Shown here one piece after another: positions 1-64,000 of a DNA stretch of 64,000 bases. Both the position numbers and the translations under genes were made by a program. The first letter of the stretch is position 1; every line of letters begins with the position of its first letter. Source of the DNA: Penicillus capitatus (lineage: Eukaryota > Plantae > Chlorophyta); assembly GCA_965649825.1 (NCBI GenBank), contig OZ287701.1, positions 547,101-611,100 of the forward strand, in the 5' to 3' direction. Under the pieces are notes generated by a model. That model ran no database searches. It worked only from the letters and a program-made list of their open reading frames with translations, and was not told the origin of the DNA.

Positions 1-281
1 CTGAGAGCCTTCAACGTTTCCTGTCGACGTACTCCAACTCTTAACAGCGAAGATTTCTTGTTGTCTTCACCAGGAGCTGCAGCCGCAAGGGGGTCTCTTT
101 CTTGGTGTCGAGTGAGTCGCCGAGGTCTTCCCTCGTCTCCTCGTCGAAAGCCTTCGGCATCTAGGTAACCTCTCCGTACAACAAGCGTTAAGCAGTCGGC
201 TTCGGCGTAAGGTCCGTTTATGCTGACAGCCAAGATGGCAGGCATGTAGCGCGTTCTTGCACGGCAAGCATGACGGGACAA
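1..281 (-). CDS. 5' fragment of an ankyrin-repeat gene paralog (continues off the window); start codon uncertain
   Basis: Near-identical mirror of 51065..51345, which is the first exon region of the ankyrin gene at 51065..54229. Confidence 0.55.
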   Translation of the reverse strand, partial: MSRHACRARTRYMPAILAVSINGPYAEADCLTLVVRRGYLDAEGFRRGDEGRPRRLTRHQERDPLAAAAPGEDNKKSSLLRVGVRRQETLKAL

Positions 282-1210
282 CGAAGCATCCGAAGAGGCA
301 GAGATGGCTGTACACGTTTACATAGGTCTTCCACAGTAGAACACAACATAGAAACGCTAGAGTCAAAGCATCCATGAGCCAAAGAAGTCGGTCTCATGCA
401 TCGACGAGGCCTGATATGCTTCAATGCATCCAGCACGCTCATCTAGTGCAGGAACAAAGTAATCAGCATGATGCGACCTTCTCCCTGTTTTGAGCAACGT
501 GCATATGGACTGTGGAGAAAAACGGAGATCGGAATCAAGGTCTAGTCCAGAAGTTTCGTTCGACACATACAGGCGTTCGACTCATCTCTTGTACGAACAA
601 CTGCATAGAATCTCGCTAATCAGAGGAAATAGAAGAAACACGTGCAGAGATCCTTGGACACTGCACATCTTTGCACGTCGTCGACGAGCGGATCGTTGAT
701 CTACCGGCCGTGACTGTTGCGCCTAACCACGTTTGCAAACCTTAGATTGCAAGATGAGCTCGGAGAGATGAGAGTGTCCAGAGAGGCCCAAGGCCGGGGA
801 GAGTGTGTTTTTGTTACTTCAGAGAAGATCGCATAGAACAACAGACGGATTTAAGGCATCGAGCAAAAGCAGCACTTCGTGACTCACTCTGCACGTTTGG
901 CAACTCACAAAGACCGTTCAAGAACGCTGAAGTGACAGTCATTCTGATTCGCGCCACTGCTCTCAGCTGGGAGAGTGCAATGACAGCAGAATATGCACAG
1001 GTTACTTCCACACGAGACGGTTGAGTACAAAGAGCCACGTCAGATTCAATAAGTTCAGTTTCGTCGGACCTGACGCCGAACTGCGGTCCGCCTGCCGCAT
1101 GAAACGACGTCTAGAAAGATAAACGACTGCGACATCGCGCATGTCATCCGTCGCCCGGCAAACTGCAACCCCTTCTTCTATCGCATCTGGCATCTGGATT
1201 GCAGTCGAGG

Positions 1211-1801
1211 ATGAGAGTTTGGCAGTGTGCGTTGCGCGGGGACGGACGGGAATCTTGTCCTGGGTCTGAAGGTGACAGAGTCGAGGCCACGCTCTTCCCA
1301 TGCCTATATGAGACCTACCCGTCGGACAACAATATCATCGGAGGAAGTCTCCAAGTAGACGAACCCGTTGGAGTCACGTTTAATAAGCTTTCCATTGCGT
1401 TTGGCGTCATAGCCCTTGTCGTCTGGGTCGTGGGAATCATTCGTTTGAGACAAGAAATCCGAAATGGAAACAGCCCCCTGATCGCCTTTCTGGTCTACGT
1501 TTTCGTTGTCGCCGTCGGAAGTGTCGTCTGTGGCGTCCTGCTGCAATTGCAACTAAACGATTCCTCGGATGTCGTCTGTCGAGGTTACACTTCTCTGTTC
1601 GGGGAGTACGTGGAGTGTGCTATCGGTTATGTGTGCAATGGCAACAAGTTGGAGAAGGAGAATGACGGTTCGGATGTTGCACTCATGCTGTTCTTTTGTG
1701 CCTCTGCTTTTCTCTCCCCTGTCTTCGGCGCAGTAGCTTTGATGGTCGTCATCGTGACAGACGTCTTGCAATGTGACTGTTTCGTGTTCTTTCCCAACTG
1801 A
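1211..1801 (+). CDS. Small orphan membrane protein with about 3 hydrophobic segments and several Cys (copy A)
   Basis: ~196-codon ORF with hydrophobic stretches (LSIAFGVIALVVWVVGII; LIAFLVYVFVVAVGSVVCGVLL; VALMLFFCASAFLSPVFGAVALMVVIV). The frame is intact in both copies despite 16 amino-acid differences. Confidence 0.6.
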   Translation: MRVWQCALRGDGRESCPGSEGDRVEATLFPCLYETYPSDNNIIGGSLQVDEPVGVTFNKLSIAFGVIALVVWVVGIIRLRQEIRNGNSPLIAFLVYVFVVAVGSVVCGVLLQLQLNDSSDVVCRGYTSLFGEYVECAIGYVCNGNKLEKENDGSDVALMLFFCASAFLSPVFGAVALMVVIVTDVLQCDCFVFFPN

Positions 1802-3022
1802 CGGATCAATTCTGAATGTCGCAGTCGACGTCTACAGATTCTGAGATGTTTGGCAATCGATACGGTTCATTCACACTGGAAAACGAGAATACGTTCAATC
1901 TAATAAAAAATACGTCCGTCGTCTGGTTGTCGTAGTCACAATTCATATCCTTCCAACCTCACCTGTTGCACATTGGTGTCTGTCTGTTAGCATCCATACG
2001 ATTCATTAAGCACGTACGTGGCAATGATGTGAGTATACACTTCAGATGTCAAGAATAGTGGATCTCTGGATTGTTTGTGTTTCCAAACGCCTGTTCTTCC
2101 CTGTAAGCCAACAAACCGTGAATGTGAGCTGTCGTTTCGGAAAAGGAAATCAATCACCAACCTGAGATCAGACAAAAGGAATCGAGACTGAACGCATAAC
2201 AGCCAGAATCGTGGTGCGCGGCATTGTCCGTCATCTGACTGTCTACCGTAAGCGACGTAGGGATCTTAAAGGCAGAGTTTCGATTGACCATAAGAACTTC
2301 ATGTGAATCGACACGACAACTCTGCAGCGCGGCACAGGACTTGAGATCTAGTAATTACGAGAACTGCGTCTGAGTGACTTCACGGCAGGATTATCGCCGG
2401 GTAACTGTCCCTGGACGCGAAGCGTCCTGCGGCTCAGATGTGCGAAGATTCCCTAGCGAAAGAGAGCAGCTTCTTCTGGAATTTTTACATCCAATACGCA
2501 CTTCCAACACGCTGTGCTACACCGACGTCGTGGGCGACATGGTCGAGCGATCAAGAATCACCATGACGACGTCGGCAGCTGCGAAGCCGATGATTCACAT
2601 GCGTAGCTCAATACATGGATGTTGGCGTTAGGTCGCCCCGCTAGACATCTGATCGTGTCGACGCACGTCGAGAGGCGTGGCACGATAGAAGCAGAACGCA
2701 AAGATTCACGGCGCCTGTCTGAGGCGTTGCGTCTGTTATCTTCTAGAGGTCTTGTCTCACCTGTCTTCTCAGTGGCAGTCAACAGTCGATGTGCCACTTA
2801 CGCGACTTCAGCGTTGTTGATTGACGCGTCCAGTCAAAGTACATTCAACTACTACAGCATGAATCCATCATCCGTGAAGCGATTTTGATTTTAGTTCGCC
2901 CCGACGCGCATGAACAGTTTGTTCGTTCGCATTGTTCTACGCAGTTCTCCATATTCTACCGCACAAGCTCTTTTCGTTCGCGCGACAGCAAAGGGAACGG
3001 CGGTGTTTGCCGAAAGGAAGAC

Positions 3023-6000
3023 ATGTCTGAGCGAAGGTGCCGTCTGTCGTCGAAGACGCCGTTGGTGCACATTCTGGTCTTGCTGTTTCTGCTGCGCCGA
3101 GGAGAGGCGTTTTCGCTCTTCCCAGGTGAGGCGTTTCACGGCAGCTTTCTTCTACGCAGTCTGTAGTAACGCCAGCTGCCTGTGCTGTCTGGTTGCGAGG
3201 TTCAATGACTGTTTGATGCTCAGGTGGCCGCTGGAGAGTACGCGCTACGCCTACAGAGGTTCACGTCAAAACGACTAAAGAGGCAAAGACGGCAATCGCG
3301 CAGCTTCGAAGCAAACAGACGATCGTCTTCGACTTGGACACCATGCAACTGACAGAGAAGCTTGTCATCAAAGGCGTATCTGACGTCACCATCCGCGGAG
3401 TCCGCCCATCGACGACGCTCCTTTGTCCTGCCAAAGAGAGCATCTTCTTCATCAGGCACTCCATCGCAGACGCTGCCTGCCGCTATACGGAGTCGGTTTC
3501 TTTGCACGCAGAAACTGTCGAAACCTTCGAATCGAATCTCTGGTATTCAGAGGGTGCAAGAATGCTAGCGCCATCGAAGTCTTGGGATCCCGATGGCCTT
3601 TCGCCGTCGGACCAAGAGAGCGCAGATATGCGACGGCGTTTTCGAACGATTTTGACGAGGACTGGCAGTCGGCAGGTACGAATAGCGACTGAATGCATCA
3701 TCAATCCTCGTGGCGATCATGAATAGGGTGCTCGGTGACTCTGGAACGCTGCGAATTTAGAGACAACTCCAAAAAGGGATCGACTGTTCCATCTGCTAAC
3801 CTTCCACACGAGAACCCTTCACCGCAAGATCTGGGCGGGAGTGCGTTATCAGTTTATCGCTGTGCGCTGAACCTGAGCGAGACGCAGTTCACAAACAACA
3901 GTGCCGACATTGGAGGTGCTGTGGATGTGCGGAACGCTCCTGTGAGGGCCAAGCGATGCGAGTTTCGCAACAACAAGGCGATGCTGATTGCGGGGGCCAT
4001 TTTCTGTGACAAAATTGATGCAAGCTTTCAGCACTGCCGGTTTGAGGGAAACAGTGGCGAAGACGGAGGGGCAGTTCTTGTGTTTTCAGGAAATGTGACC
4101 TTTAGTCGATGCAGCATCACAAAAAACAACGCCACCAACGAAGGCGGCGGCGTTATTGCTTTCGGCGATGCTACCTTTTATGATTGCGACATCTCAAATA
4201 ACACCGCCCTCCGCCGCGGCGGACTCTTCGTGGAAGGCGTCGCCAAGTTCAGTCGCTGCAGTTTTAAGCACAACAGCGCTGGATTTCAAGGAGGTGCTCT
4301 TGACGTAAGAAAAATGGCGACATTGAATAACTGTACGTTCACAAACAACGTAGCTGGTCGCAGTGGAGGAGCCATCATGTCGGTTGCCTGCAGTTTGACG
4401 TGCAATGAGCTCATCATGCGTCACAACCGGGCAGAAGAAGGCGGTGCCATTTTGACTGTTGACGGCGTTGTCAACTTCACTGACTGCAGATTCGAAGAAA
4501 ATTTAGCCAAAATAGGCGGCGGAGCAGGAGCATTTCGACGAACGAATGTGACGGTAAAAGTCACTACTGTTTTTAAATCAAACTATGCTCGTATTGGTGG
4601 TGCATTGGAACTGCAAGAAGGAAGCTACTTTAAAATTGCAGGAGGGTCCATACACTCCCAGAGCATTACAAGGTTCATATCCAACATGGCTTACATGACA
4701 GGAGGTGCAATTGCTTGCATCCAATGCGGTACGTTGCTTTTCTACACTTACTTCGCTAGGCGTGTGTTTGTTGCATGATAGGCAGTATCGATTTTCAAAA
4801 TTACAGCCAGGCACACTTCAGTGAGAATCTGGCAACAAATGCTGGCGGTGCAATGCTCTTCGAGGGAGGGACTCTGTTTTCGGACCAGCATTCAGATCTC
4901 CTCTTTGCGAGAAACATCGCTTCGATTGGAGGAGCGATATGCCTCAGAAACGCCGGAGGGATCAAGAACGAATGCCAAGCATCGCCCTGTTTCACCTATG
5001 CGAACAACACAGCTGTGCTCGGCGGTGCTGTCTACATCAGTTCCGAGCACGAACTATCTCAATCCATTGAGGTAAATAGCACTCAGCAGTGTTCCTCCTG
5101 ACTCCTTTTTGCTTTCAGATTCGAGGGTGGCATTTGACAGATAACCGAGCACTCGGTCTGGAATGGCTGGGAGCTGATGGCGACTCTCTCGTTCGAACGT
5201 GGCTTCACGTGAGGAAGCTGACTGATCAGTACCTCTCACATATCGAGGATCGCCATCAAGGCGAAGGAGGTGGCTTCTACCTTTCTCTCAATAACACCAG
5301 GGGTGGATCGAGTGTCAATGTGGTGCTGGAAGAAATCTTGATCTTAAGGAATAAGGCCTTCACTGGAGGTGAGTTTTTCCGTGTGCGAAATACAGACTGA
5401 GAGACTGACTTCACTAGGTGGTATGTATCTCGAAGGCAGCTACGAAAACGGGGTACGCTTTTGCAAAGCTCCTTGTCCTCGTACCGTCTTCCCAAATCAG
5501 CGCTACCGTCGTGTAATGTTTAGTAATGTAAATGTAACCCAAAACACTGCCGAAAACAGTGGAAGCGGTTTGTATGTGGGTTCAATATCGAACTTCACAT
5601 ATGTTTGTCATGATAATGATACTGGGACAGATGACGTCTTAGAAGGACATGTTTTTGGAAATCGAACATGCCTTACTGTGACGGACAACCGCATGCTCGT
5701 GAGTTTGTTCCCCATCTCCATGATCACACTTTCTCTGTTATCATTTAGACTGACAGGAATAGCAGATTTAATGACATCGGGACGGATGCTGTGTCTTTGA
5801 AGATAGAAAACGTCGATGGACCTTTGTCATTATCTCCTGGAGATCTTCTGGGCATCTCTTCCAAGGTTAACGAGAACTCAGAATGTTTACCCAGAGACAT
5901 CAGGATCTCCGTGAGAGACATCTTTGGCGAAACCATCGAATGGCCAAACAAAGATAGCGGTGAGATCATGCTGCAGCTTCTTCGAGGTTCATGCGTGACC

Positions 6001-8459
6001 CGTAGATCTTACTGTGGTGCTCGAATCTCAACATATCAGCGGAACAACTGAATACACTGCTAAGAACGGGATTGTGAGCATCGACAACACAAACGTGGTC
6101 GGAGCAGACATTAATGATACGATAGTGATTCGTTCGAAGGACGGAAGGGATCTGTCGACGTCGCTGCTCTTCGGCACGACACACTGTCAACACGGAGAGC
6201 TCATGGATGAAGACAAAGCCACCTGCTCTCGATGCAAGTACTCGTACTACAGTTTTTCGACGATAGACGAATGCCGAGAGTGTGAGGAGCATGGGATATG
6301 CGTTGGAACCATGGCATTAGTGCCAGAGGAAGAGTACTGGCACTCGACGCCCTTCTCGCCTCGAATGATCAAGTGTCCCATCGACAGAGCATGCAAAAGA
6401 AAGAACAGAACAAGGGATCTGGTCGAGTACTATGAAGATACGACGCGCGTCTCAGAAGAACTACGAACATGGAACCAACGCGACAGAGAGCCGGAAGACT
6501 TTACAGAAGACTATCGCCAGTGTTCAGATGCATACAACGGGACACTGTGCGCCTCATGCGCCGAAGATCACGGACGATCAGTAAGCGGCCAATGCGAGCC
6601 TTGCGGCGGCAGCCGTTTGGTATCTGTTGTCATGACCCTAGCTTCAGCAGTTTTGTTCTTTTTTGCTTTTTCTTTCAAGTTGTGGCTGGCCTGGAGAAGC
6701 ATGCACACAGATCTTGCCATCCAAGCTTCGCAGAGACTGAGGATTGCCCTCGGATTGGATAAGCCATCCTTGTCTTCGAGAAGCTCATCGGACGCTGAAG
6801 ACAGTTCGTCGGAGCCACTCATCCAGTACCGTACAGACCATCCAGATCCAGTCAAAGACGCCCAATCGCTTGATGAGAAGGCGACCGGACCTTCCACCTC
6901 CGAACAGCGAGCTATAGAGATCAGACGCTTGTCGCGATCCGACCCAACGACAGATCAGCACAGATGTCGCGTGTGCACGGATGGTTCTAACTGTCCTGAC
7001 TTCAGCGGAGCAGTGGGATCCGTCTTGACGATCTATGGAGTAAGAAAATCTACCGTCGATGGGCATTGCTGATGTCATTTTGTTCTCGTAGATACTGTTC
7101 GACTACATGCAACTGTGCAGTTTGGCCTTTTCTCTTGGCGTCAAGTGGGAAACGGGCATGAAAGCGATGCTCCGCGTTCAAGGTAGCCAGACTATTCATC
7201 TGTGGCCCAGGTTCACCATTCGACGATGAATCGTAGGCGCAGCGGCGAGGATGAGCAACATTATCCGCTTGCACCCATTCGAGTGCAACTTCTCAAATGA
7301 ATACCGTCATGAGCACGAGAAAGGCTTGACACTGATGATTCTGTTGATTCGAACTCTCTTCCCTTTCGTCATACTTCTCTTCTATGTCCTCGTGTTTGCA
7401 TTGTGGAGGCTCAGTCTCAAACGACGAGGAGATCGATCAACCGAAGACGGTGTGACTCCACATGTCCAGTTTATTTTCTTTTTTGGGTTTTTCACTTACG
7501 TTATCGACATCGCTGGTGAACTGTTCCGCGTTGTCAGTTTTGCCAAGCTGCCAGAGAAGCTCTCCGATCACGAGTTCAATCGCTACGATCTCCTGAACGA
7601 CAGTTTCATCTGGTCAGAAGACTCGTCCATCAAATACATGGAGGGCCCTCATTTGTGGGTATCTGTGCTTTCTCTGACTTTGTTGTTTTGTTGCCTCGTT
7701 GTTCTCGGCTACTCGGCATCCATCATATACCGTGGTAAACAGCAAGACCTGTTGGAGGATGTCGATTTCGTGCACAAGTACGGATTCCTGTACTCTGGAC
7801 TCCGTTCCACAGGACTGGCTCTGTACTGGAACATTTTCGTGGCAATGAGAACGATAACGCTGTCGTTCGTCATCATTGTTTTCTCGCCGATCAATGTGAC
7901 CACGAACATCAGACTGGGTTTGGTGTTCATTGTGATTTTTATATCTTACTCAATGCATGTCTTCGTTCAGCCGATTGACAGCGAAGACATTCACAAGACG
8001 CTGCCTTCCTGCATGGGCAGCACTCTCAGATGGCTGGGTGCTGATCAACTGGCGTCGTCGTGGATATGGTTCAACAACAGAATCGGTTACAACTCGATGG
8101 AGGCAACATCGCTGCTGATGGCTCTCTTCGTCTATGCCATTGCGACATCCATCACCGACGAAGAAGCATCCATGCTCTCCATCAACGCGCTTTCCACCAT
8201 CTGCGCCACTCTGAATTTCATTTTCATGGGCTTCTTGTTTTGTCGCCTGTGGTTAGGCGTCCACAGAATACTGGACGTGCATGCAAAACACTTGAGGATA
8301 TGGTTTCAAGGAATCCACGATCTGGAGGAAGATGAAGACACCTGGCTGGTTCACAAGCTCTGGGTCATCTGGCAATCGGGCCGGGCGGATAGGGACACCA
8401 GTGGATTCTGGAAGCTGCGTTCTGAACTCGCTTCTCTCAATGACCCCTTAAAAACATAA
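3023..8459 (+). CDS. Large receptor-like protein (copy A): signal peptide, Pmp-like right-handed beta-helix repeats, Cys-rich region, multi-pass TM C-terminus; about 10 exons
   Basis: ATG 3023 followed by a hydrophobic leader (PLVHILVLLFLLRRG). Repeated GGA(I/L/V) and FxxN motifs at 3735-5070. Cys-rich CQHGELM..CSRC..C..C..C..GYNGTLCASC at 6180-6610. Several TM helices at 6620-8270. The exons can be joined in frame through GT/GC-AG introns (e.g. 3126-3223, 3456-3510, 3676-3726), ending at TAA 8457-8459. Confidence 0.85.
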
Positions 8460-9417
8460 GTCTCTTTTTGAACTCAGTTCCCTGCCAGTAATGAAAGGAG
8501 AACTTGGAACATCTCTAATAATTGCACTGATGAACGTCAGTGCTGCTGCAGTCTATAAACTCAACCATTCTTTCAGCCGTCTTCTGATGAAGGATGACGG
8601 TTTGCTTTTTCAGTTTACGTCTGTATAAATCTTACTCGTTAATTGTCTTTGCCTTCTGTTATCAGCAGCATGGGTGCGCATCTAGACTATCGCAGCCATG
8701 TTTAATGGTATGTCATTGGAATTTGAATGTCGATAAGATCCTTCAATCCACATGTTCAGTGCTCACATGTTATGTAGAGTTTCCGATCCCGTGAAACGCA
8801 TAGATGTGGCATTGCGTGTAATCAAAGTGTTTATTGAGCATGAAATGATTTCAGCTCATCGTTCCAGCTTGTTTGACATCCCCAGCACAAAGCATTTTCG
8901 GGTCGCAACCTCGTTTCGTTCCTAGATCAAAGATCAAAAACTGTCCAGTGAGAGACAACACATGAGATCATCGACGCGCAGATTCAACGGATAGACTGAA
9001 AGGAATCTGTGAGAAGCTTCATGCACGATGTGACAGCTATGCAATGGCCAATCCCATCCCGATGTTAATGTGACACTCGGCATGCGCGTTTCCACAACGG
9101 GGCGCGGCAAAAGAGAATACAGACGTGTGAGTTCAGAATGCGGCACAATGCCTGATTCGTAGCGCGCCACACTCTAACAGGCGAACACATGAGGCAGACG
9201 TCAGGAGAGCTATCGATTTTATGTACGCACTGACGTGACAGATGGATGATCTTTGTTTGCGTCGTTTCGCGAGTGTCATCAGCTGTCTTGTCACAGCAAC
9301 TTTCAATTGCGGACCACAAAACGATGGCCTCATTTAGTGTCGGCGCATCCTTGACAACTCTCTGTTTGTCTGTCCGTTTCTTGAACGGCACCTCTTTCAC
9401 GAACCTGCTTTGTTATC

Positions 9418-10036
9418 ATGACACTTTTCTCCGTTTCCTGGGCGGCCCGTATTCTCTGCCTAATTTCCTGCATCTCAGTTGCCGCGGCTATTGAAGTTAC
9501 CGTTTGCAAAGATGCGCCAACCTTCGAGCTGCCCGAAGTGAAGGTGGTACCCGACCCACCAGCGTTTGGCAAAGATGTGACAGTCTCCGTCACGTTTAAC
9601 CCAGGTCCGCCGACAGCCGCCATGAGCAGACGTTCAATTTCTCTGTAGATGGCGTCAGGGAGTCAGGCGCTACTTTCGAGTGGGAGGTTTTCTTCATCAT
9701 GTTCGACTTCTTTTCAACGGAGTACCAAAGAAGAGACGCATCTACTCGCAAGCTGTGCGACTACACGAAATGCCCTATTACAGGCGATAAAGTCACGATC
9801 AATTACAAAACGTTGATACCAGACGTCGGAGACGTCGGAGGTCTGGCGGGATTTCTCGGACAGGTAATACATAAGACACTTTACAGCGCACTGCATTCCG
9901 TTTGTGGCAGTTCATTGACGTCCTGCTTCGCGTGAAAGTGAAGAGTAACGAAGACAATCTTGTCGCGTGTTTCGAAATCAAAACTAAGATCAAAGACACG
10001 TCTGGATACGATCACACACACTGGGTCTCTGTGTAG
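9418..10036 (+). CDS. Secreted ML-domain (MD-2-related lipid-recognition / NPC2-like) protein, 3 exons (copy A)
   Basis: Signal peptide MTLFSVSWAARILCLISCISVAAA, then VCKD..VKVVPDPPAFGKDVTVSV, LCDYTKCPI and ACFEI, matching the ML-family Cys spacing. Two ~50-nt GT-AG introns give a continuous frame to TAG 10034-10036. Confidence 0.85.
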
Positions 10037-11263
10037 AGGATCCGTCCGATCCAGGAGGACGCTCGATTCAGAGATCTGCCGATCGAACCGTATACAGCAG
10101 CTTTGCATTTGTATGGCATCTATCTCTGTCCTGATTGGTTGGATCATTTCAGGCAGTCCGTTTTGTTGGGCGAGGGAATCGATTTCTGAATGGATTTTTG
10201 GTTTCTTCTCCGAGTGTTTTGCACTCTTCAACGTAGTATGTTCTCTCATAATGGATTGGTGTTGGACAGTAAGACATGAACACTTTATGAGTTGTTGCCG
10301 TCTGCTCACCATTGTTCAAAATGGTGTCTGGACAGTTTTTTTGTTTTGTCTATCAGCGCCTGTTGAAAGTGGACAACTTTTAAGAGGAATGATTGGTTTA
10401 CTTGCGTTGTGAGCGATTCGCTTCTTCTCGGTCACACCTATCACACTCTCGGATCCAATCGATTGATTCTCCGATCGCCTAAAAGAGTGTCGGATTCGTA
10501 TTGATTCACTGCTTGACTGGGTTTAGATCATCTGCGACTCCATGCACAATGTCGGATTTGAGTGAACGCTAAAGACTGTGCGGTGTGTTCCCTGAAATAC
10601 CGCTTTTCTGTGATAAACACATTCTGCAGAGACGAAGCTATGAACAGATCGATGAGATTCGCACTTCAATGAGATAGATCTTGGTAAGCAGGACGAGTGC
10701 TTCACGGAGTTTGTTCGGAAGGCAAGATCAAAAGAAACATCTAGCTTTGATGTCAACCAGGTTAAGGATACAGAAGCTTCTCAGCATGACATTTCATGGT
10801 TACTACATAAGCCTTGTGTAATCTGCCATCGTCTGGATTTCCTTCCAGTGAATGTTTCTGCCTCCGTTAACTCTCGATAAAGCGCTAAGTGAGAAGAAGA
10901 GCTTGTCAAGGTTCTCTCTCAATAGAGCACGATGTATGAACATCAATGACATTGCCCGTGGCTCACTGACATTTCCACTGTTCACGTTGCGTTTGACAAC
11001 TGGACAACCAAAGAGATACCAGTCACACGATGGTCATTTCTCCACTATTCCAGTCCATTGTTTAGATCTCACGAAAAACACACGACTCACGAATACTTCA
11101 TCGACGACCGTTTCAGCATACTAACATTGTGCGTAAGTGAGACGACCCTTTTGTTGTATCATAGAGAGTCCCTTCATTTACATAGTGCTCGAAATCGTCA
11201 TTCGTTCATGTGAGAAAACTCCGAACAGAAGTTCAATCCAGCAGCTAAACGGCCGGTACCTTT

Positions 11264-48300: not shown

Positions 48301-48312
48301 TCGTGCAGACAT
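42354..48312 (-). CDS. Pmp-repeat beta-helix / Cys-rich / multi-TM receptor-like protein (copy B, longer ectodomain)
   Basis: Mirror of 3023..8459. ATG at 48312. The 554-aa beta-helix ORF 45980-47644, the 352-aa Cys-rich ORF and the 402-aa TM ORF join in frame at the splice sites I checked. Confidence 0.85.
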
Positions 48313-50131: not shown

Positions 50132-51064
50132 CCTCGACTGCAATCCAGATGCCAGATGCGATAGAAGAAAGGGTTGCAGTTTGCCGGGCGACGGATGACA
50201 TGCGAGCGATGTCGCAGTCGTTTATTTTTCTAGACGTCGTTTCATGCGGCAGGCGGACCGCAGTTCGGCGTCAGGTCCGACGAAATTGAACTTACTGAAT
50301 CTGACGTGGCTCTTTGTACTCAACCGTCTCGTGTGGAAGTAACCTGTGCATATTCTGCTGTCATTGCACTCTCCCAGCTGAGAGCAGTGGCGTGGACCTG
50401 AATGACTGTCACTTCAGTGTTCTTGAACGGTCTTTGTGAGTTGCCAAACGTGCAGATTCAGTCACGAAGTGCTGCTTGTGCTCGATGCCTTAAATCCGTG
50501 TGTTGTTGTTCTATACGATCTTCTCTGAAGTAACAAAAACACACTCTCCCCGGCCTTGGGCCTCTCTGGACGCATTCTCCTTTCTCCGAGCTCATCTTGC
50601 AATCGAAGGTTGACAACTGTGATCGGGCGCGACAGTCACGGCCGGTAGATCAACGATCCGCTCGTCGACGACGTGCAAAGACGTGAAGTATCCGAAGATC
50701 TCTGCACGTGTTTCTTCTACTTCCTCTGATTAGCGAGATTCCGTGCAGTTCGTACAAGATATGTGTCGAACGATTGTATGTGTCGAACGAAACTTCTAGA
50801 CTAGACCTCGATTCCGATCTCCGTTTTTCTCCACAGTCCATATGCACGTTGCTCAAAACAGGGAGAAGGTCGCATCACGCTGATTACTTTGTTCCTGCAC
50901 TAGATGAGCGTGCTGGATGCATTGAAGCATATCAGGCCTCGTCGATGCATGAGACCGACTTCTTTGGCTCATGGATGCTTTGACTCTAGCGTTTCTATGT
51001 TGTGTTCTACTGTGGAAGACCTATGTAAACGTGTACAGCTATCTTTGCCTCTTCGGATGCTTCG

Positions 51065-54000: not shown

Positions 54001-54229
54001 GCTTCATATCGCCGCAGAAGATGGCGAGATAGAGATCGTCATGGTAAACACCAGATACGTTATTTCTCATTTCGCTCGACCGGCCTTGCTTCAGGTTCTT
54101 CTGGACACCGGGGCATCCAAGTTAATCACCGTAAAGGGTAAAATACCTTTGGATCTCATTGGCACAAAAGCTAGCACACCTTGTCCCAAAGATGTTCGGT
54201 CTAAGCTCGAAGACTTGTTGGCCCCTTGA
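51065..54229 (+). CDS. Ankyrin-repeat protein, about 17 repeats in 18 exons; one exon has an in-frame TGA; true start uncertain
   Basis: Successive exons translate to TPLHIAARYG, TPAHKAAVSGH, TPLHVAANQG, TALHVAAENGH, TPLHLAVSNGN etc. Phase-0 introns; terminal stop TGA 54227-54229. Confidence 0.9.
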
Positions 54230-56543
54230 ATCTTTTGCTCTAGTTCTAGCAGTTTTTCATCCCTCTAGTGCCATTCTGTTTTCTTCTTCAAGATGCCTGT
54301 TGCGGAGAGGGGAATAATGTCTGTAATCTGTTCGGGCGGGTTGTGTGACTGTGGGTGCGCCGCATCTGCCATTCTTGGTAGAGAGGTTTTGAGACATCTA
54401 TGGCCTGTTCCTTTTCCTGCCTGCGACTCCAGACGAACTGCTTGACTCTCTAAACATTCTTCTACAGATCCTCATCAAATGAGGAGCTTTCGGTGCATTT
54501 GCGCCAATACAAACATACAGCAGCTCTCGATTTGCAATCCTCTTTCTCGGCAGTCTAGTCGGGAAGGATCGGATTCGTAAGAAAACTGCTGATTGGGTTG
54601 TCTGCATCCAAACAGATTTGTAAACAAATGAGAGAGCTTCCTAGACCGTTGCCTTCCTAGACCGTTGCACTTGTCTGTCTCAGAACACCATCGTAATCGA
54701 CGCGCAATAAGTATTCATCCAGCCACTAATCGGTCTACGTCTCTGCGGACAGAACGTTCGATTTCGCGAATGGTAAAAAACTGTCCACCGAAGTTCGGAC
54801 TTTGCTCGGATTCAGAGGATGACGCTGTGTTGCATCCTGGATTGCATGTCGTCAGTTGAAAGGAAGACCTTTCCGTCAGCTACGTGCATGTTGGCAGAGA
54901 TATGTGTGCCCCGCTGAAACTGCGAAACCGTCGATGGGATCGCACATATGATCTGGTCTCGTTCTCGATCGTCCACCGTTTCGCTTTCTCGTCGCTTGCG
55001 CGTCTTTGAGCTGCAGTCAAAACGACTGCGCGATCATCGCCGGCATCTGTCTCTCCCCCAGAAGCGCGTCGCAATAGTACGGCCATTGCGCACCGTGGAT
55101 CTTAGTTTCGGATAAGGGTCCTGATACAGGCTCCATATGCGGCCTTTCGGCCAAAGCGGTTGACACGTCGCTTTCTCATTGTGGACACTCTGCGTTTACA
55201 GACAGAAGTTTGGAATGCGATCGTTGGCGTCTTAACACGACAGAGATCCAATGGGTCATTCACGAAATCACTGATCGCGATAACATGAAGTTCTGCAGCT
55301 GTACGCGTTGCATGGACAACACGGTCGAACCCGCGTCCGTCTCGATCGTCCGGTATCCGTCTGGCCGCATGGACACCGCATGACATCCCAGGTTCTGATC
55401 AGCAAGGTAGCCGAGAGAATGCGATTCGAGATACAGACACGGGAGAAGCACGTGAGTGGTTTCTCGACTGTACTCGAGACACACCTATGCACCTGTTTCG
55501 AGACGGCGGGTGGTTCCGGGGTGTTCGATAAACGATTCTATGAGAGCGAGAGGCAACAAACGTCGAATCACGTATAGACACTGCAGATGTCGAGAGATCG
55601 GGGGGACTCGGTATCGACCAAGGACCGTACGTCGGCCGCGCGACGTCGTTCTCTCCGAGAATCTCGCTCTGTCAAGAGAGGAGGTTATCCGTGTTGTAGG
55701 ATCAGCGTCACCCGCTGCATCGCGATTCCGTCCAGTGAACCGTTTCAGTCAAAACAGAAGAATATTACGCGTATCGTTCGTTCACATCTCTCATCGCAAT
55801 CGCCAGAGCTATATGCATACACACAGGCCATGCGCGTCCTCTGTATCTGTGCCCATCCACACATCCTCCTGATCGTCGTTCCGTCAGAAGCAGTTCATCT
55901 GCATCGCAACATCGACTTCGACGACTTCGTCCGTGGCGACCTCGACACGCTCTCGAGACTTGCTCTGACTCGCCCCCCTGCATGATGTGCCGCGGATGAT
56001 GTGACATCTTTCGACATCGTCGTCTTACACTTCGTCGCGTCGAGTCTTCTTTCGGCGCTCCTCCCGGCCGTTCATCGTCTCGAGCGCATCTCCGATTCGC
56101 TGCAGGTCTCTCTACAGCGCATAGAACCGTTCGGCGATCCGCGACAAAACCAAGACGCCACGGTCAACGCCATCAACGCCCGGAGAGACGCGAAGGAACG
56201 CCGACGCCGTCGGCGAGTGTCGGCGGCGCGATGTTGGAGCATCCGACGACGCCCTCTCCATTCGGATGCGACGTGAACGAACATACACAACGACGATACC
56301 TGGACGTCTTCGTGTGTCGCCTGCATTTGAAAAAGGTGTTTGAAGTCGAACGGCAATCCCTTGGTCCCCTTCCGCGCGCGCGTTCGACTCTTCGTCATGA
56401 TCGCGAAACGCCGCTGTCGTTGATGACGTCACAGCGAAATACAATCGATCGCGTCCGAGACAAGAATCCAACAGCAGCGTCGTTGCGGTACGAAATGACA
56501 GGCGTCGACGTCGACATGGCCGACCGTAGATGACGTCCATCTA

Positions 56544-57068
56544 TCAGCTCCATCGAACACCCACGAAGAACCCAGTGCAGAACGACCCCACGCTCGGAAT
56601 GCCCTGCACGCACAACGCTCGTGCACGTGTGATCGTGGCATGAGTCCCTTGCTTGGGCCAGCAGACGCAGGATGCTGGGCGAAGCGACTTGCAGATCGTC
56701 CTCGTCGAACTTTCCGTCCCCTGTCAGATCCAGCCTCTTCTCGATGACGTCCCAGTGAATGTCCACGACGCCAGCGTACACCAGACCCTTCGGACATCGA
56801 GATCTCTCTGTTTCGACGCGGAAGTTGACACCTGTAGGAGTATGAAACTGACGCCCACGGCGACGACTGCCTTCCTTTCGAGGTGCTTAAGCGCAGCGCC
56901 GCACGCGAAACCGATCATGCCACTCAGACCGACAGACGACAGAAGAGGACCGATCCAGTCCCAAGCTTCGTCCACCGCCTCGTCGACTTGATCCGCTTCG
57001 TCGACCGGATCCGTCTCGGCAGCTTCGACCGGACGACTACGAAAAGACGCATGGGCCACGCCCGCCAC
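56544..57068 (-). CDS. FUN14-family mitochondrial outer-membrane protein, 3 exons
   Basis: SGMIGFACGAALK..AVVAVGVSFILLQGLVYAGVVDIHWDVIEKRLDLTGDGKFD..GIPSVGSFCTGFFVG* after removing one GT-AG and one GC-AG intron (56604-56652). Confidence 0.8.
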
Positions 57069-57312
57069 AGACAGCCAGTGAAGACGCGAGGGACGACCAT
57101 TCGAATCTCCGTCTCCTCCACCGCCTTGGGATCACACGGTGATGAGGGAACGGCCAGGTTTAAGACGGCCTGTCTTTCGTCCCGGTCCCCGACCGCCGTT
57201 TCCTGATCCCAACGCTCCAAAGCGATGGCGATTCCTTCGCGGTCGAAGTCGTCGTCGTTTTGGACCGTCGGACAACAGACGTCCTGATGAGAGGAAGGGC
57301 GCGTTCGAGCAC

Positions 57313-57987
57313 ATGGTGCTGCTCCGAAACCGCGGTTATTTTTCGCCTGGATGGGCATTATTGTCTGTCACGGTCAAGGCAGCGAGGCCTTCGATTTGCA
57401 TCATTAGGCGCATCGTTCTGATTTCGCCATCTGCCTGCTATCAGAAGTTTCGCATCTTCCGTCTGCGTTTGTTTGTGCAGGTATTCCGTCTGCGAAAAAA
57501 ACGACGCGTTCGTCGTTGCCAGGAAACCAAAACCTCTCTTCATGAAGAATCGTGACATGCGCCGTCCGCAGAACATCGACGACAGCAGCGGCATGTCGCC
57601 GCGCATTGTGGAAACGCGCGACGGTTGTTTCTTCTGCGCGAAGCGCTTCGAAGGGCCAGGCAGAGTGGGCGACCCATGCGAATCCGTCAAGACGGTGAGG
57701 CCACTGACGCATTCGTTGCGCCGTCACGCCGAGCGTTTGGACTTTTCCAGTGTGTGCGTTCGCCGGCTTCCATCGGAGACGGGTCGACCGGAATCCGTAC
57801 GACGGAGCCGGTAGCAGACGCGGAGTGGATGTCTTTCCACGAGGGAAGCTTGCATGGGACGGACGCGGCCGACGGCGAGAGACGCAGACCGCCTCTTCGT
57901 GTCGAGGCGAGTGCCGACTGCGCGAAGCTTTTTTATCCGAGTCGCGTGTTCTCCATCAGGGCCTACGATCCGGAGAGTGCTCACTGA
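57313..57987 (+). CDS. Possible small 3-exon gene of unknown function
   Basis: Three ORF segments can be joined in frame (GC-AG intron 57408-57480; GT-AG intron ~57694-57749). No recognised motif. Confidence 0.3.
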
Positions 57988-59871
57988 GTCCGAGCCAAGT
58001 CAGCGTTTACGCAGTTACGAAAGTAACAATCCCTCTACCGAGGACTCATGTTTCGACGCGGCATTCGACAGATGTGGGATCCTGTCAGCGTCGCGAGGAC
58101 GTTTCCCTCGCTCCCGCCTCGTCATCGCCGCCACGGGGAGACGTCGTCAGGCATCTTCTTCAGAGGACACGGCCGTGAGCGGGCTCCCCGAATCAGATCG
58201 CATGTGCAGAGGAGCATGACAAGCGGGGACCATCCGTCGTTCCACTCGCGTGGATCCTCTTTCAGTCAGGCAGAACGGTCTCGCTCCCAGGCTCTCGGAG
58301 GCGACTGTGCAGAGGTGCTCACGTCTTCTCCCTGCTACAGCTTTCAGCCCTCTGCTCATGGAGTCTCCGAGGAAATCTGCGAGGTGGAGGTCGAGGCGCA
58401 TGGCCTCGTGCAGATCTTTCGGACGGGAAAGAAGTTCGCAGCGAGGAATCTGGAGCGAGTGGGACCGTTCTCCCGGAATCTTGACGGTCCCGCTCTACTG
58501 CAAGGGCTTCTGCGATCCGGGAGAGGCGACGAGAGACCTGGCCCGCCTGCCGCCGGGGGGCCGCACGTCATCGCGTTCACGTTCTGTCCGATCCGGCTCG
58601 CGGCGCGGAGAGACTCGTCTTCGTGGGCGATCTTGGTCTCAGAGGCGGCGGAGACAGAGACCCTCCGTCCGGCAGCGATTCGCCGGGACGCCGGGCTGCC
58701 TCCCGGTTTCGGCGGAGGAGGGACCATCGTCTGGTCGAGCCTTACATCGTTCGCTACTTTGTCGGGAGGAAGGACCAACTCAGCGAGATGATTGAAGCGT
58801 TCGAGTCGAGCGACGAGTCGCTTGTCGTCAGGGCGATCGTCGGCCCGGGCGGCATCGGGAAGACTCAGCTCGCGACACGGCTGTTCGACCTTTTCAGGGG
58901 AAAGCGCCACTACGACGGCGCGTTCTGGATACCTTCAAGCTCCAGAGAGACCCTCACTGCCACGTTCCTGCAAATCGCAGAGTATCTGAGAGTTCGCACC
59001 GACACCGAAACCCCGGAGCTCATCAAACGTGTTCGAGAAGAGCTCGGACGATCTCACTGTTTCTACGTCTTCGACGACGCTCTGAGTTTCGAACTGATAC
59101 GCGAGTACTTTCCTGCGACAAGCGGACATGTCATCGTAACGACGAGGGAGGCTGGAGGCGGAGACTGGGAGAACAACATGCTTCGACTGGGACCGTTCGA
59201 CGAAGACGAAGCTCGGATTCTGGCAGAGAGACTCGAATGCGGCAGGTCAATGCGGCCGAACGATCTAGACGACTTGATGGACCTGTTGTCTCGGATCCCG
59301 CTGGTCCTCGCTCAATTCTTCTCCGTGATGCGGGACGAAGAGAGGTCGAGCCCCGCCGAATGGGTGCAGCGTCTGCTGCGGTACGAAGTCACGGGACGAG
59401 AGGCCAAAGCGATAGAAGAGCTCTCAGCGACGCGAATCGGCGAAGAAGCGAGCGGAATGGTCTTCGTGTTCAACTGGAGCGTGCAGAGGATTTCGGAGGA
59501 ACCCAACGACCTCGGCCCCCGTTCGCTCGACATTCTCGCCAAGCTAGCGCTGCTCGATCCGAACGGTGTGCCCGTCGAGTGGATACACAAGTGGCACGAA
59601 TGTGGTGATGGACAGTCCGGGGAAAGAACGCAGAATGCCATAAGGATCCTTGAGCGCTTCTCTCACGTCGCGTGGGACACAAAGACGAATCAAATCTACA
59701 TCCACGCCGAGAGGCAACTTTTAGCGAGACACCTTCTCCTAAAGAGCGACGACAGTGTTTCCAGTCACGTTCGAGAATCCGAAGAACAGCACAAGAACGA
59801 GATCGGAGACCACGTGAAGACCATAGTGGATTCAATCGGACGATACATTGACGGGTGGAGAACGGACCGTT

Positions 59872-60172
59872 GTCGTGTTAAGGCGTAATGCTCACAATAA
59901 TGCGCTCATCTACCTACACTTGTATCAATCTCCAAGTGACAGGTCGTAGGTTCTCTATAGCTTCCCATCCAAAAATAGACCCGCGGCTATACGTCGCAGA
60001 TTCCAAGTAGATTCCGGAATCTGCGCAGAATATTCCTTTTTGTGACTTAATAAAGTACCCTATAAAAGCGTTGTAGATGTACTGATCTCGTCTTTCGTTT
60101 ATCAGACTTTACGTTTCAAAGGTTTACGTGCGCCCACCATTCAAATTGTCTCCATCTAAAACTCTACGCGAC
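59872..60172. mobile_element. 301-bp AT-rich insertion with a 6-bp target-site duplication (ACCGTT); MITE-like non-autonomous element
   Basis: ACCGTT at 59866-59871 and 60173-60178. Short imperfect terminal inverted repeat GTCGTGT...ACGCGAC. Removing the insert and one TSD copy restores the frame (WRTDR-SNQELWSSLARNG). Confidence 0.75.
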
Positions 60173-60339
60173 ACCGTTCGAACCAAGAACTTTGGTCCTC
60201 GCTCGCAAGAAACGGGTCGGCACTCCTGAAACACTGCGCGAGCTCGGAGGACACTGGCGTGGAAATAAAGTTACTCCAACACACAACACGGTCGTACAGA
60301 GAGATATGCATGTTTCAAGAATCGCTCACCAATGCTCAA

Positions 60340-62600
60340 AAAGCACTCGAGACGTGCGAGCGCCTTCACGGCGACGCAGATCATCCGGACACCGTCCAGT
60401 GCATCAAGAGCTAGGCCTTCGGACTCGACCGAACGGGGAGAATCAACGAAGCCGTGCCGCTCTACAAGAGGGCCCTCGACATGTGCGATCCCCTTCACGG
60501 CGACGCGGACCATCCGGACACCGTCGATTGCATCAAGATCTACGCCATCGGACTCGACCGAACAGGGAGAATCAACGAAGCCGTGCCGCCCCTTCACGGC
60601 GATGCGGACCATCCGGACACCGTCCAGTGCACCAAGAGCTACGCCATCGGACCGAACAAACGGGGAGAATCAACGAAGCCGTGTCGCTCTACAAGAGGGC
60701 CCTCGACATGTGCGAGCGCCTTCACGGCGACGCGGACCATCCGGACACCGTCCAGTGCATCAAGAGCTACGCCATCGGACTCGACCGAACGGGGAGAATC
60801 AACGAAGCCCTGTCGCTCAGAAAGAGGGCCCTCGACATGTGCGAGCGCCTTCACGGCGACGCGGACCATCCGGACACCGTCCAGTGCATCAAGAGCTACG
60901 CCATCGGACTCGACCGAACGGGGAGAATCAACGAAGCCGTGCCGCTATACAAGAGGGCCCTCGACATGTGCGAGCGCCTTCACGGCGACGCGGACCATCC
61001 GGACACCGTCCAGTGCATCAAGAGCTACGCCATCGGACTCGACCGAACGGGAAGAATCAACGAAGCCGTGCCGCTCTGCAAGATGGCCCTCGACATGTGC
61101 GAGCGTCTTCACGGCGACGCGGACCATCCGGACACCGTCCAGTGCATCAAGAGCTACGCCATCGGACTCGACCGAACGGGGAGAGACAACGAAGCCGTGC
61201 CGCTCTACAAGAGGGCCCTCGACATGTGCGAGCGCCTTTACGGCGACGCGGACCATCCGGACACCGTCCAGTGCATCAAGATCTACGCCATCGGACTCGA
61301 CCGAACGGGGAGAATCAACGAAGCCGTGCCACTCTTTAAGAGGGCCCTCGACATGTGCGAGCGCCTTCACACCGACGCGGACCATCCGGACACCGTCGAT
61401 TGCATCAAGAGCTACGCCGTCGGACTCGAACGAACGGGGAGAGACAACGAATCCCTGCCGTTTAGAAAGAGGGCCCTCGACATGTGCGAGCGTCTTCACG
61501 GCGACGCGGACCATCCGGACACCGTCGATAGCATCAAGATCTACGTCATCGGACTCGACCGAACGGGGAGAATCAACGAAGCCGTGCCGCTATACAAGAG
61601 GGCCCTCGACATGTGCGAGCGCCTTCACGGCGACGCGGACCATCCGGACACCGTCGAGTGCTTCAAGAGCTACGCCATCGGACTCGAACGAACGGGGAGA
61701 GACAACGAATCCCTGCCGTTTAGAAAGAGGGCCCTCGACATGTGCGAGCGTCTTCACGGCGACGCGGACCATCCGGACACCGTCGATTGCATCAAGATCT
61801 ACGCCATCGGACTCGACCGAACGGGGAGAATCAACGAAGCCGTGCCGCTATACAAGAGGGCCCTCGACATGTGCGAGCGCCTTCACGGCGACGCGGACCA
61901 TCCGGACACCGTCGAGTGCTTCAAGAGCTACGCCATCGGACTCGAACGAACGGGGAGAGACAACGAATCCCTGCCGTTTAGAAAGAGGGCCCTCGACATG
62001 TGCGAGCGTCTTCACGGCGACGCGGACCATCCGGACACCGTCGATTGCATCAAGATCTACGCCATCGGACTCGACCGAACGGGGAGAATCAACGAGGCCG
62101 TGCTGCTCGACAAGAGGGCCCTCGACATGTGCAAGCGCCTTCACGGCGACGCGGACCATCCGGACACCGTCGAGTGCTTCAAGAGCTACGCCATCGGACT
62201 CGAACGAACGGGGAGAATCAACCAAGCCTTGCCGCTCTACAGGAGGGCCCTCGACATGTGCGAGCGTCTTCACGGCGACGCGGACCATCCGGACACCGTT
62301 GAGTGCATCAAGAGCTACGCCGCCGGACTCGACCGAACGGGGAGAATCAACGAAGCCTTGCCGCTCTACAGGAGGGCCCTCGACATGTGCGAGCGTCTTC
62401 ACGGCGACGCGGACCATCCGGACACCGTTGAGTGCATCAAGAGCTACGCCGCCGGACTCGACCGAACGGGGAGAATCAACGAAGCCTTGCCGCTCTACAG
62501 GAGGGCCCTCGACATGTGCGAGCGCCTTCACGGCGACGCGGACCATCCGGACACCGTCGAGTGCATGCGCACTTATGCTGCTTGTTTGTCAAGAATCGGA
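60340..62600 (+). repeat. Coding tandem repeat, 129-nt unit (43-aa TPR): 15 intact units plus ~2.7 degenerate 5' units
   Basis: ttcacggcga recurs at 60721 and 60850 (period 129). Unit RINEAVPLYKRALDMCERLHGDADHPDTVQCIKSYAIGLDRTG. Confidence 0.97.
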
Positions 62601-64000
62601 AGGGACAATGAACTTTGCTTTACATGGAGAGATTGAACAAAATGCGTGAACGTTTCGGTGACATTTAAATTGTTGGATGTTGCCTAGCCTATTTTACTTG
62701 TTTTCCTGTTGAATGGCATGCTAAGGCTGTTGAAATTCTTCGGTTTGAATTCACTGTGTCTCTTAGCGAGAGAAACATACAGGTCAACAATTGCTATCAA
62801 TGTTGAAAGGATTTTTTCGTAAAAAGAAGTCCCTATTGTGTTCTTTTGCGTCTTAGTTGTCGGACATCACCGTTCGCCTAGCATTAACTTCGCGCCGGAT
62901 TGGTGTTCACTCGATCGCGCTTACCATGAGATTTATATAGCCTCTCTACCAAATCACAAGGTCTTATGTCTGCATGGCGCCACCTCTAGCTTTGCTTACC
63001 GATTAGAAGTTTACATTCTTTTTGAACAATACACCGCATCGATCTCCGGGAAGTCTGTCTGCCGCCTACTCACTACTAGTCTCTAAGTCGCGATTTATCA
63101 TCGATACATAAATGCTGGCATCTGTTTGTTTTCAAGGTGTTATGCGCCTCAAAAGATTCTTACTTAAATTCGTTAATCTTTAAAGAATTACAGAGGAAAG
63201 GGTTGCAGTTGTCCGCCAACTCGACATTTTCTTCTGGGTGAAGGCGAGCTCGTTCTCGACGTAGGTGTCTTTTTCCTTGCGGATGACTCTACCGGCGTTG
63301 TTGTCCAAGTTCACCACGTGTAGTGCTTGAGACCTACCGTATGGATCACCATTGACCAATAGTCGGACGTAGAATTGCAGGACAGTCGTCAATGCCAATA
63401 AATGGCGGCCGACTGAACGACAGTTTTTCTCGAAAAAACTATCTGCTATCTTTCTCGATCTAAATTGACGCTTGAGATCTCTTTCTTCGCAGCGCTCTGA
63501 CAGAAGATTGGTTTATTCTTGATCGAGTCGTTGTTTCCTTCGAAGATAACGCTGCTACTAACGGGCATGACACTGACAGACATTAAGACTGAAGACGATC
63601 ACTTTGCACCCCATCATCCAGTACCCTGCACCAAGTACTAATTGATGCACACAATTTCGCGCGCACTCCTCAGTTTGGCAACGAGATCTTTCTTTTGTAC
63701 TTAGGTGCACACCGACTGACCATTTGTGTCGCGCGTTTACTTCTGAGGTTTTATCTATATTCTTGCTGCGGCTTTTTGCATTGCATACAACACAACCATG
63801 ACACTGATGCAGTTTAAAGTTCGATCGAGGAATGACTGCTTGTCTAAATTCCTTCGTGTGCCAGATACGAAAAACTGCAGTGAGTGTTTTACACAGGAAT
63901 ACTGCGATCAGAGCCTCCAATCGTCGCGGCAAAGACACCGTGCATGTTGACGACAATGCTCACGATTAAAGAGACTGTGCATTTGCAAGTCATTCTTTTA

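Follow-up and report, generated by a model that had tools for sequence, protein, structure and literature searches.

In the NPC2/NPC1 system, a soluble ML protein passes lipid to a multi-pass membrane protein. Fungal proteins of the FLC/Pkd2 family contribute to the integrity of the wall, to calcium homeostasis and to coping with osmotic stress; all Flc1 homologs contain PF06011 and most also have an N-terminal ML-like domain (PF14558), and in Mucoromycota the N-terminal domain is a true ML domain (PF02221) (PMC9600462). Pkd2 of S. pombe begins with a signal peptide, after which come an ML-like domain that putatively binds lipid, nine transmembrane (TM) helices and a cytoplasmic tail (bioRxiv 10.1101/2022.08.11.503631), and one report describes its calcium permeability as activated by membrane stretching (PMC9727806). 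Here we analyzed a stretch of 64,000 nucleotides (the window) assigned to the green alga Penicillus capitatus (GenBank assembly GCA_965649825.1, contig OZ287701.1, positions 547,101 to 611,100 of the forward strand), which carries a block of four genes in two inverted copies. The largest gene of the block codes for a beta-helix surface protein (the receptor) that appears to be of the FLC/Pkd2 type, and the gene next to it codes for a secreted ML-domain protein, which may be a trans-encoded counterpart of the fungal ML module; a nearby gene of the NOD-like receptor (NLR) kind has decayed into a pseudogene. We assign a probability of about 0.55 to this reading as a whole.

An inverted duplication of four genes

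Window positions 1-10675 (arm A, plus strand; inverted repeats I1-I22) pair in inverted orientation with positions 40126-51345 at 74-98% identity. In the DNA upstream of the window (L002), the duplication runs 4.27 kb (4267 nt) further and matches 51346-55564 at 90.7%, so the ankyrin gene was duplicated too. Arm B thus occupies 40126-55564 (minus strand), and its identity profile against arm A and a third copy (copy C, below) is mosaic. The arms are ~15 kb each and flank a single-copy spacer of ~29.4 kb (10676-40125). Each arm comprises genes for an ankyrin-repeat protein, a small protein with three TM segments (3-TM protein), the receptor and the secreted ML-domain protein. An earlier note on this DNA had listed these genes and an NB-ARC-TPR gene, together with the duplication; the list is confirmed in its essentials, and the duplication is confirmed as well.

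The receptor has a Pmp-type beta-helix and a PF06011-like membrane domain

Receptor copy A (3023-8459, plus strand; 1626 aa) could be modeled without stops as 11 exons (3023-3125, 3224-3455, 3512-3675, 3727-4728, 4782-5071, 5119-5368, 5418-5698, 5749-5959, 6006-7039, 7092-7182 and 7237-8459). Copy B (42354-48312, minus strand; 1801 aa) also gave an intact model, with GT-AG boundaries at 10/10 introns. A third intact paralog, copy C (1784 aa), was detected on another contig of the same sample (L003; ctg332023_28x_l), whose coverage of 28x versus 39x raises the possibility that this copy comes from the genome of a second, close relative. All three copies have 11 exons, the same ten intron positions and conserved splice sites, and the introns are 44-98 nt long. 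Intron 2 of copy A (3456-3511) is of the GC-AG type, its donor being GC where copies B and C have GT; the same intron in copy B would stay in frame if unspliced.

The encoded protein starts with a signal peptide, followed by a Pmp-type right-handed beta-helix, a Cys-rich DUF7630-like stalk and eight PF06011-like TM segments. Pfam matches included Chlam_PMP (E 1.6e-19 in A and 7.5e-21 in B) and Beta_helix (E 3e-24 in B). In copy A, the signal peptide and an ectodomain of ~1040 aa precede eight hydrophobic segments, and the sequence contains 13 GGA[ILV]-like motifs and 14 FxxN motifs, 13 of the latter in the ectodomain. No autotransporter beta-barrel, LRR (leucine-rich repeat) or TIR family was matched by the receptor in Pfam, its C-terminus being alpha-helical and multi-TM, and neither PF14558 nor PF02221 was matched by the receptor or by 11 long family members. 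The copies differ in exon 4, which encodes the beta-helix: copy A has 1002 nt here, copy B 1584 nt (582 nt more than A) and copy C 1518 nt; receptor A is therefore short of ~7-8 rungs.

When the 402 aa of the last exon were used for an exhaustive profile search of 1.84 billion proteins, only 72 representatives were identified. Those of greater length (1400-1760 aa) all share one architecture, in which Chlam_PMP or Beta_helix is followed by DUF7630 and a C-terminal TM domain, and the named members come only from Bryopsidales, namely Caulerpa lentillifera, Ostreobium quekettii and Bryopsis sp. KO-2023. The Ostreobium protein P0058 and the Bryopsis protein P0044 matched PF06011 ('TRP', the fungal FLC/Pkd2 family) above its cutoff of 28.5 bits (49.8 and 29.6 bits, respectively), and this was by far the commonest family match among the aligned TM-domain open reading frames (ORFs; 7 of 24). 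The window TM domain in turn aligned with P0044 (E 1.4e-8) and P0058 (E 1.5e-4) over overlapping segments. By this transitive homology through P0044 and P0058, the receptor membrane domain is treated here as a divergent member of PF06011. An AlphaFold2 (AF2) model of the last 402 aa is a bundle of long helices (pLDDT 74); similarities of the model to GPCR, Kv and ABC proteins were dismissed as noise (E >= 0.95, TM-scores below 0.3).

The large protein is thus an uncharacterized new variant of a known membrane-protein family. We found no discussion of a Pmp-beta-helix/DUF7630/PF06011 family in the literature, nor a paper discussing Pmp-type receptors, ML genes or NLRs in Bryopsidales. Homologous genes in Bryopsis and Ostreobium span 9-13 kb at similar coding length. 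At one O. quekettii locus (L005; CAJHUC010002994.1), a DapB gene separates two Pmp/beta-helix genes of the family that are ~9 kb from each other, which suggests that the family is locally clustered in Ostreobium too. A gene for a trypsin-family protease adjoins the Pmp-TRP-like gene in L006 (13667-15158), which comes from a related alga, and likewise in L009 (20115-23001) of Bryopsis sp. KO-2023; it may be a conserved neighbor.

The secreted ML protein

The ML gene is located 960 nt downstream of the receptor gene on the same strand. Copy A (9418-10036, plus strand; 172 aa) has three exons (9418-9576, 9630-9863 and 9911-10036) separated by introns of 53 and 47 nt, and copy B occupies 40765-41383 on the minus strand. 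The spliced products matched PF02221 over profile positions 2-133 of 133, with 26.2 bits (A) and 28.2 bits (B) versus a cutoff of 22.7. By inspection, the N-terminus has a hydrophobic core ending AAA/I, that is, a signal peptide, and four Cys are placed like two of the three disulfides of NPC2 and Der p 2. The second-best Pfam match was TRP_N (PF14558), over the full length but weak (E 0.017). A single-sequence AF2 model reached a pLDDT of 46, and a comparison with PDB sequences gave no meaningful match to any solved ML structure.

A change of frame at 9600-9630 was considered as a mark of a pseudogene and rejected in favor of a 53-nt GT-AG intron (9577-9629). The intron reading is preferred because introns of 44-60 nt are usual here, the intron is kept in both copies, the spliced protein passes the PF02221 threshold and the gene shows non-neutral change (below). 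The intron sequence is identical in the two copies (9577-9629 and 41172-41224); with a 1-nt frame correction, it would encode a strand-like segment (VTVSVTFNP...) and the PF02221 score would rise from 26.2 to 30.0 bits.

Gene conversion and selection

A three-way identity profile showed that the receptor ectodomains of A, B and C are about equally distant from each other (dS, the synonymous divergence, 0.35-0.6) and that the closest pair switches locally. From about position 6800 on, the identity between A and B rises to 94-99%, and it is C that stands apart. Such a mosaic indicates repeated gene conversion among the paralogs, the ectodomains of the arms being old, diverged lineages (dS 0.4-0.6). 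The ML gene and the TM-domain exon lie in one homogenized tract, in which the arms are 97-99% identical.

All selection figures are comparisons between paralogs. The ratio of nonsynonymous to synonymous divergence (dN/dS) was 0.4-0.55 (about 0.45) for the receptor ectodomain, 0.32 for the 3-TM gene (A versus B) and 0.29 for the ankyrin gene (A versus B), the number of ankyrin repeats being unchanged. For the receptor TM domain, it was ~0.1-0.6 between A and B, where changes are few, and 0.2-0.3 against C. The ML gene behaved differently from neutral sites. Its two copies have 19 coding differences, of which codon-path counting assigned 17 as nonsynonymous and 2 as synonymous (dN 0.044, dS 0.017), and neutral sites of this tract differ by ~1% between the arms. 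The density of nonsynonymous changes was 17/399 (4.3%) versus 13/1175 (~1.1%) for neutral proxies, namely upstream intergenic DNA, introns and ML synonymous sites (Fisher p = 4e-4); when 339 nt of downstream DNA were added to the proxies, the excess had p = 5e-5. The replacements sit in three short clusters and many of them change charge. These comparisons suggest that, after the last homogenization, the ML copies gained almost only amino-acid replacements.

The earlier note had described all these genes as diversifying, with replacement excess, change of repeat number, modular exons and repeat shuffling as the signs. An excess of replacements is present in the ML gene (17 vs 2) but not in the receptor ectodomain or the ankyrin gene, and a change of repeat number is seen in the receptor (exon 4) but not in the ankyrin gene. 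The modular exons were observed as described, the ankyrin gene having mostly one repeat per 99-nt exon.

The NB-ARC-TPR gene is a pseudogene

An NB-ARC-TPR gene is located at 58234-62636 (plus strand), with the NB-ARC domain at 58554-59870 (PF00931, 38.2 bits; P-loop GPGGIGKT present) and a TPR array at 60297-62629. The array consists of ~18 units of 129 nt matching TPR_10/TPR_12 (TPR_12 E 4e-120), and the N-terminal domain matched no known family. We compared the gene with two intact relatives from a related alga (P0076 and P0077), which are 49-52% identical to the window copy and are single ORFs of 701-726 aa, in which 4-6 TPR units come after the N-terminal region and the NB-ARC domain. Alignment to these single-ORF relatives revealed several lesions: (i) the N-terminal region (58234-58552) is spread over three reading frames, with two frame changes within 58480-58554; (ii) an insert of ~304 nt with stops separates NB-ARC from the first TPR unit (59871-60174); (iii) a TAG at 60412-60414 stands where every other unit has TAC; and (iv) units 3 and 4 carry a 30-nt deletion and a 1-nt deletion causing a -1 frameshift near 60560-60655. 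The small frame changes were also considered as introns, and this was rejected, the alignment being continuous across them with no room for an intron.

In the remaining 14 full TPR units (60699-62504) and a divergent terminal unit, each of the three frames is free of stops, and an open frame is therefore uninformative on function. Full units have pN/pS 1.1, with variation concentrated at a few positions. Two unit types (VDCIKI...RINEAVPLYKR and VECFKS...RDNESLPFRKR) alternate at 61344-62117 and so form a higher-order repeat of 258 nt, which is indicative of duplication in blocks. We conclude from the lesions that the window gene is a pseudogene whose repeat array expanded recently.

In the related alga (sample ERZ26696514), the sequences nearest to the window TM domain are P0004 (63% identical) and P0008 (55%), at two loci that are 94.5% identical to each other. 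In both (L011, 2349-10549; L012, 4811-11107), a receptor fragment lies directly downstream of a giant NB-ARC-TPR gene that is intact and codes for 2073 and 1328 aa, respectively, and whose 129-nt TPR array is ~75% identical to the window array. The receptor sequence consists of the last two exons only and contains many stop codons and frameshifts. The NLR is thus dead in the window and the receptor in the other alga, and the gene order differs, which argues against mutual dependence. The situation fits a shared, unstable birth-and-death neighborhood of receptor and NLR sequences in the two species. No receptor, ML, ankyrin or FUN14 gene was found near the intact paralogs P0076 and P0077.

Other genes and properties of the window

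The 5' end of ankyrin gene copy A lies at 1-281 (minus strand), with the rest upstream of the window, and matches copy B at 51065-51345 with 98-99% identity. Copy B (51065-54229, plus strand; 5' limit uncertain; Ank_2 E 1e-99) has at least 14 repeats, most of them in one 99-nt exon each according to exon-by-exon translation, and the gene appears to be under ordinary purifying selection. The 3-TM protein (~196-200 aa; copy A 1199-1801, plus strand; copy B 49541-50143, minus strand) was recognized as an ORF with three hydrophobic segments and had no significant Pfam match. A FUN14-family gene (56400-57070, minus strand; PF04930, 24.9 bits) is homologous to positions 918-2609 of L003, where it also lies upstream of receptor copy C, and is a bystander. 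None of the ankyrin, 3-TM and FUN14 genes shows anything beyond co-location.

The spacer encodes a nucleoporin (FG-type repeats and a Nucleoporin2 domain), isopentenyl-diphosphate isomerase (IDI), an eIF4G-like protein, a MutS homolog and CHLH (Mg-chelatase H). It also contains ORFs of 150-426 aa without a Pfam match (14697-17027, 28816-29298, 30432-31466 and 32252-33532) and is therefore not purely composed of recognizable housekeeping genes. The earlier note had drawn one locus over 1-62636, which takes in this 29-kb single-copy spacer of mostly housekeeping genes, and had stated that every non-housekeeping gene in it codes for a solenoid or a binding module; this was overstated, as the FUN14 gene and several ORFs without a domain match are also present.

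The window contig corresponds to ctg340429_39x_l in the ENA metagenome assembly ERZ25074695. The DNA is nuclear and eukaryotic, from a green alga of the siphonous, bryopsidalean type whose introns are very short. The nuclear CHLH gene points to an alga, and the named relatives of the receptor family make the ulvophyte origin supposed in the earlier note reasonable. Conserved genes are split by short GT-AG introns, such as a 60-nt intron in CHLH (37271-37330), and the modeled introns of CHLH and the receptor and ML genes in the window and L003 are 44-98 nt, mostly 46-60 nt (e.g., 7040-7091 and 9864-9910). The standard genetic code holds for the window genes. A code with TAA and TAG read as Gln, as in some ulvophytes, was considered on account of the TGA ends of CHLH, eIF4G and IDI and the TAG in TPR unit 1, and was rejected: neither TAA nor TAG occurs in frame among the ~1380 codons of CHLH, and the standard code leaves the other long ORFs uninterrupted. 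No rRNA or tRNA was found within the window. GC content is 58-59% over 56001-62000, which holds the FUN14 gene and the NLR pseudogene, vs ~50% in the rest of the window.

Evidence for and against an ML-receptor partnership

In the reading that we prefer, the large protein would be a plasma-membrane sensor of the FLC/Pkd2 type, whose TM domain might conduct or regulate Ca2+ and whose beta-helix ectodomain might contact extracellular material, for example cell wall or foreign surfaces. The ML protein would be the trans-encoded counterpart of the ML or ML-like lipid-binding domain that is fused to the same TM domain in fungi, and the ankyrin, 3-TM and FUN14 genes would be co-duplicated or neighboring genes to which no role in this mechanism is assigned. 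As ML and the PF06011 domain form one polypeptide in fungi, the classical domain-fusion argument suggests a functional link between them. This fusion, the shared conversion tract and the non-neutral divergence of ML make it plausible that the ML protein partners the receptor, on the strength of one genomic event.

Several observations weigh against this reading. The window's own TM domain gave no direct match to PF06011 even at E <= 10, and its AF2 model (pLDDT 74) had no PDB fold match (best E 0.95, TM-scores below 0.3). A word-based homolog search found no relative of the ML protein at E <= 0.01. The dN/dS of the ML gene taken alone, 2.5, is not significantly above 1, and short tracts converted from a paralog not seen here could account for part of its clustered changes. 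No ML gene adjoins any of nine other members or fragments of the family, among them the closest paralog and the decayed fragments of L011 and L012; the loci examined were copy C, Ostreobium L005, Bryopsis L009 and L010, L006, L011 and L012 of the related alga and a JGI contig (L004). No ML sequence or annotation was detected within 10 kb in L005, L006, L009, L010 and L004 by tblastn, which has limited power for a very divergent ML, and the Bryopsis and Ostreobium loci have eukaryotic gene models with precomputed Pfam matches, none of which is ML. In copy C, the homology to the arms stops just past the receptor stop codon and a BAHD-like acyltransferase gene and another gene follow, with no ML; the ankyrin gene is missing too, and the 3-TM gene is broken by two frameshifts. 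The duplicated block is thus the one place where ML adjoins the receptor, and this points to a single evolutionary event, apparently lineage-specific and then copied by duplication.

Alternative explanations

The alternative that survives best is that the receptor is a Ca2+ sensor for wall, turgor or wounding of the FLC/Pkd2 kind, and that the ML, ankyrin and 3-TM genes are chance neighbors without a functional link to it. The single occurrence of the ML-receptor adjacency agrees with it, as do the intact copy C receptor without ML or ankyrin gene and with a broken 3-TM gene, the unrelated neighbors at other family loci and the known functions of fungal FLC/Pkd2 proteins in the wall, osmotic stress and calcium homeostasis (PMC9600462). 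However, the fungal fusion of ML with PF06011 makes a chance adjacency of these two domain types less likely (PMC9600462), one homogenized tract is common to the ML gene and the TM-domain exon, and ML changed in a non-neutral way. We regard the absence of any link as a serious possibility, though on balance unlikely.

A bolder version of the partnership would make the ML protein a trans-acting, ligand-presenting subunit of a beta-helix TRP-like channel, with two cognate pairs diverging under positive selection, and the whole an undescribed surface-recognition system of siphonous green algae, in which two genes would share what is one polypeptide in fungi, set in a birth-and-death neighborhood shared with NB-ARC-TPR genes. 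This version seems to us improbable.

The earlier note had proposed a recognition or immunity locus. Taken in full, this explanation would have ML present a microbial lipid to the receptor in the manner of MD-2 and TLR4, and the ankyrin protein and the NLR would be linked immune parts, all diversifying under attack by pathogens. Such a proposal can draw on the ML replacement excess, on the rung indels and mosaic conversion of the ectodomain among three paralogs, on a homogenized TPR array with few hypervariable positions, as in fungal NLRs (PMC4986451), and on the proximity of NLR and receptor sequences in a second alga too. However, the NLR carries frameshifts, an insertion and a nonsense codon and is a pseudogene; in the other alga it is the receptor fragment that is dead, which means that the two genes can do without each other, and there is no receptor, ML or ankyrin gene in the vicinity of two further NLR paralogs that are intact. 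The dN/dS values of the ankyrin gene (0.29) and the receptor ectodomain (~0.45) speak against it as well, and nothing links the locus to microbes, to a microbial ligand or to immunity. The adjacency of ML and receptor expected in relatives was absent at every other family locus examined, which goes part of the way to what the earlier note had itself named as a refutation. The wider linkage of components also failed to hold in relatives, as the ankyrin gene is absent in copy C and the NLR-receptor proximity recurs once, with one partner decayed in each species. The analogy with MD-2/TLR4 is a poor fit, the receptor having no LRR or TIR domain and not being a single-pass protein. We therefore consider this explanation a poor candidate, and an immune role of the locus is not supported. 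Judging from the functions of the fungal relatives, a role in wall, turgor or wound sensing appears at least as likely.

Finally, although the source is a metagenome assembly and the contig of the third copy differs in coverage (28x vs 39x), it is extremely unlikely that the two arms are haplotypes or collapsed repeats falsely joined as an inverted repeat, because they differ by 1-26% and by large structural differences, enclose 29 kb of unique genes within a 724-kb contig and both encode intact but different proteins.

If the ML protein and the receptor do cooperate, the pair would show the ML-plus-TRP-like architecture of fungi divided by nature between two genes, and it would be a handle on the function of the poorly understood ML-like domain in FLC/Pkd2 proteins. 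A family of surface sensors would then also be defined for giant single-celled algae, in which next to nothing is known in molecular terms of how wounds and microbes are sensed. If they do not, the locus still illustrates clearly how a membrane-protein family confined to one lineage undergoes mosaic gene conversion and varies in the length of its ectodomain. It is also an example of neighboring NLR and receptor genes that became pseudogenes reciprocally in two related algae.

Comparison with known systems

The NB-ARC-TPR gene is similar to NLRs of fungi, brown algae and bacteria in having a P-loop NB-ARC domain followed by a homogenized TPR_10/12 array with few variable positions (PMC4986451); however, the window copy is disabled by several lesions, and the intact relatives are in the related alga. 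The ectodomain of the receptor resembles chlamydial Pmp proteins in the GGA[ILV]/FxxN repeats that form a right-handed beta-helix (PMC11166332). Its anchor, however, is an alpha-helical domain of eight TM segments rather than an autotransporter beta-barrel, and the receptor is a eukaryotic nuclear gene with ten spliceosomal introns.

MD-2/TLR4 likewise pairs a small secreted ML protein with a membrane receptor that has a solenoid ectodomain. In the window, however, the solenoid is a beta-helix and not LRR, and the receptor is multi-pass and lacks TIR; only the ML fold family is common to both systems. NPC2/NPC1 shares with the window the combination of a soluble ML protein and a multi-pass membrane protein, but the window TM domain is not of the sterol-sensing or RND type, and neither Pfam nor structural comparison revealed a similarity to NPC1.

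The resemblance to FLC/Pkd2 proteins extends further. The multi-pass TM domain would belong to the same Pfam family by way of the Ostreobium and Bryopsis members, the extracellular N-terminal part lies behind a signal peptide, an ML-type lipid-binding module is associated with it, and the eight hydrophobic segments of the receptor compare with ~9 TM helices expected after the extracellular domain. There are differences: the ectodomain is a ~900-aa Pmp beta-helix with a Cys-rich stalk instead of an ML-like domain, the ML protein is a separate secreted product encoded downstream whereas it is fused in most fungal members, and the protein falls below the PF06011 threshold. On this comparison, FLC/Pkd2 and, more loosely, NPC2/NPC1 provide a closer precedent for a possible ML-receptor partnership than does MD-2/TLR4.

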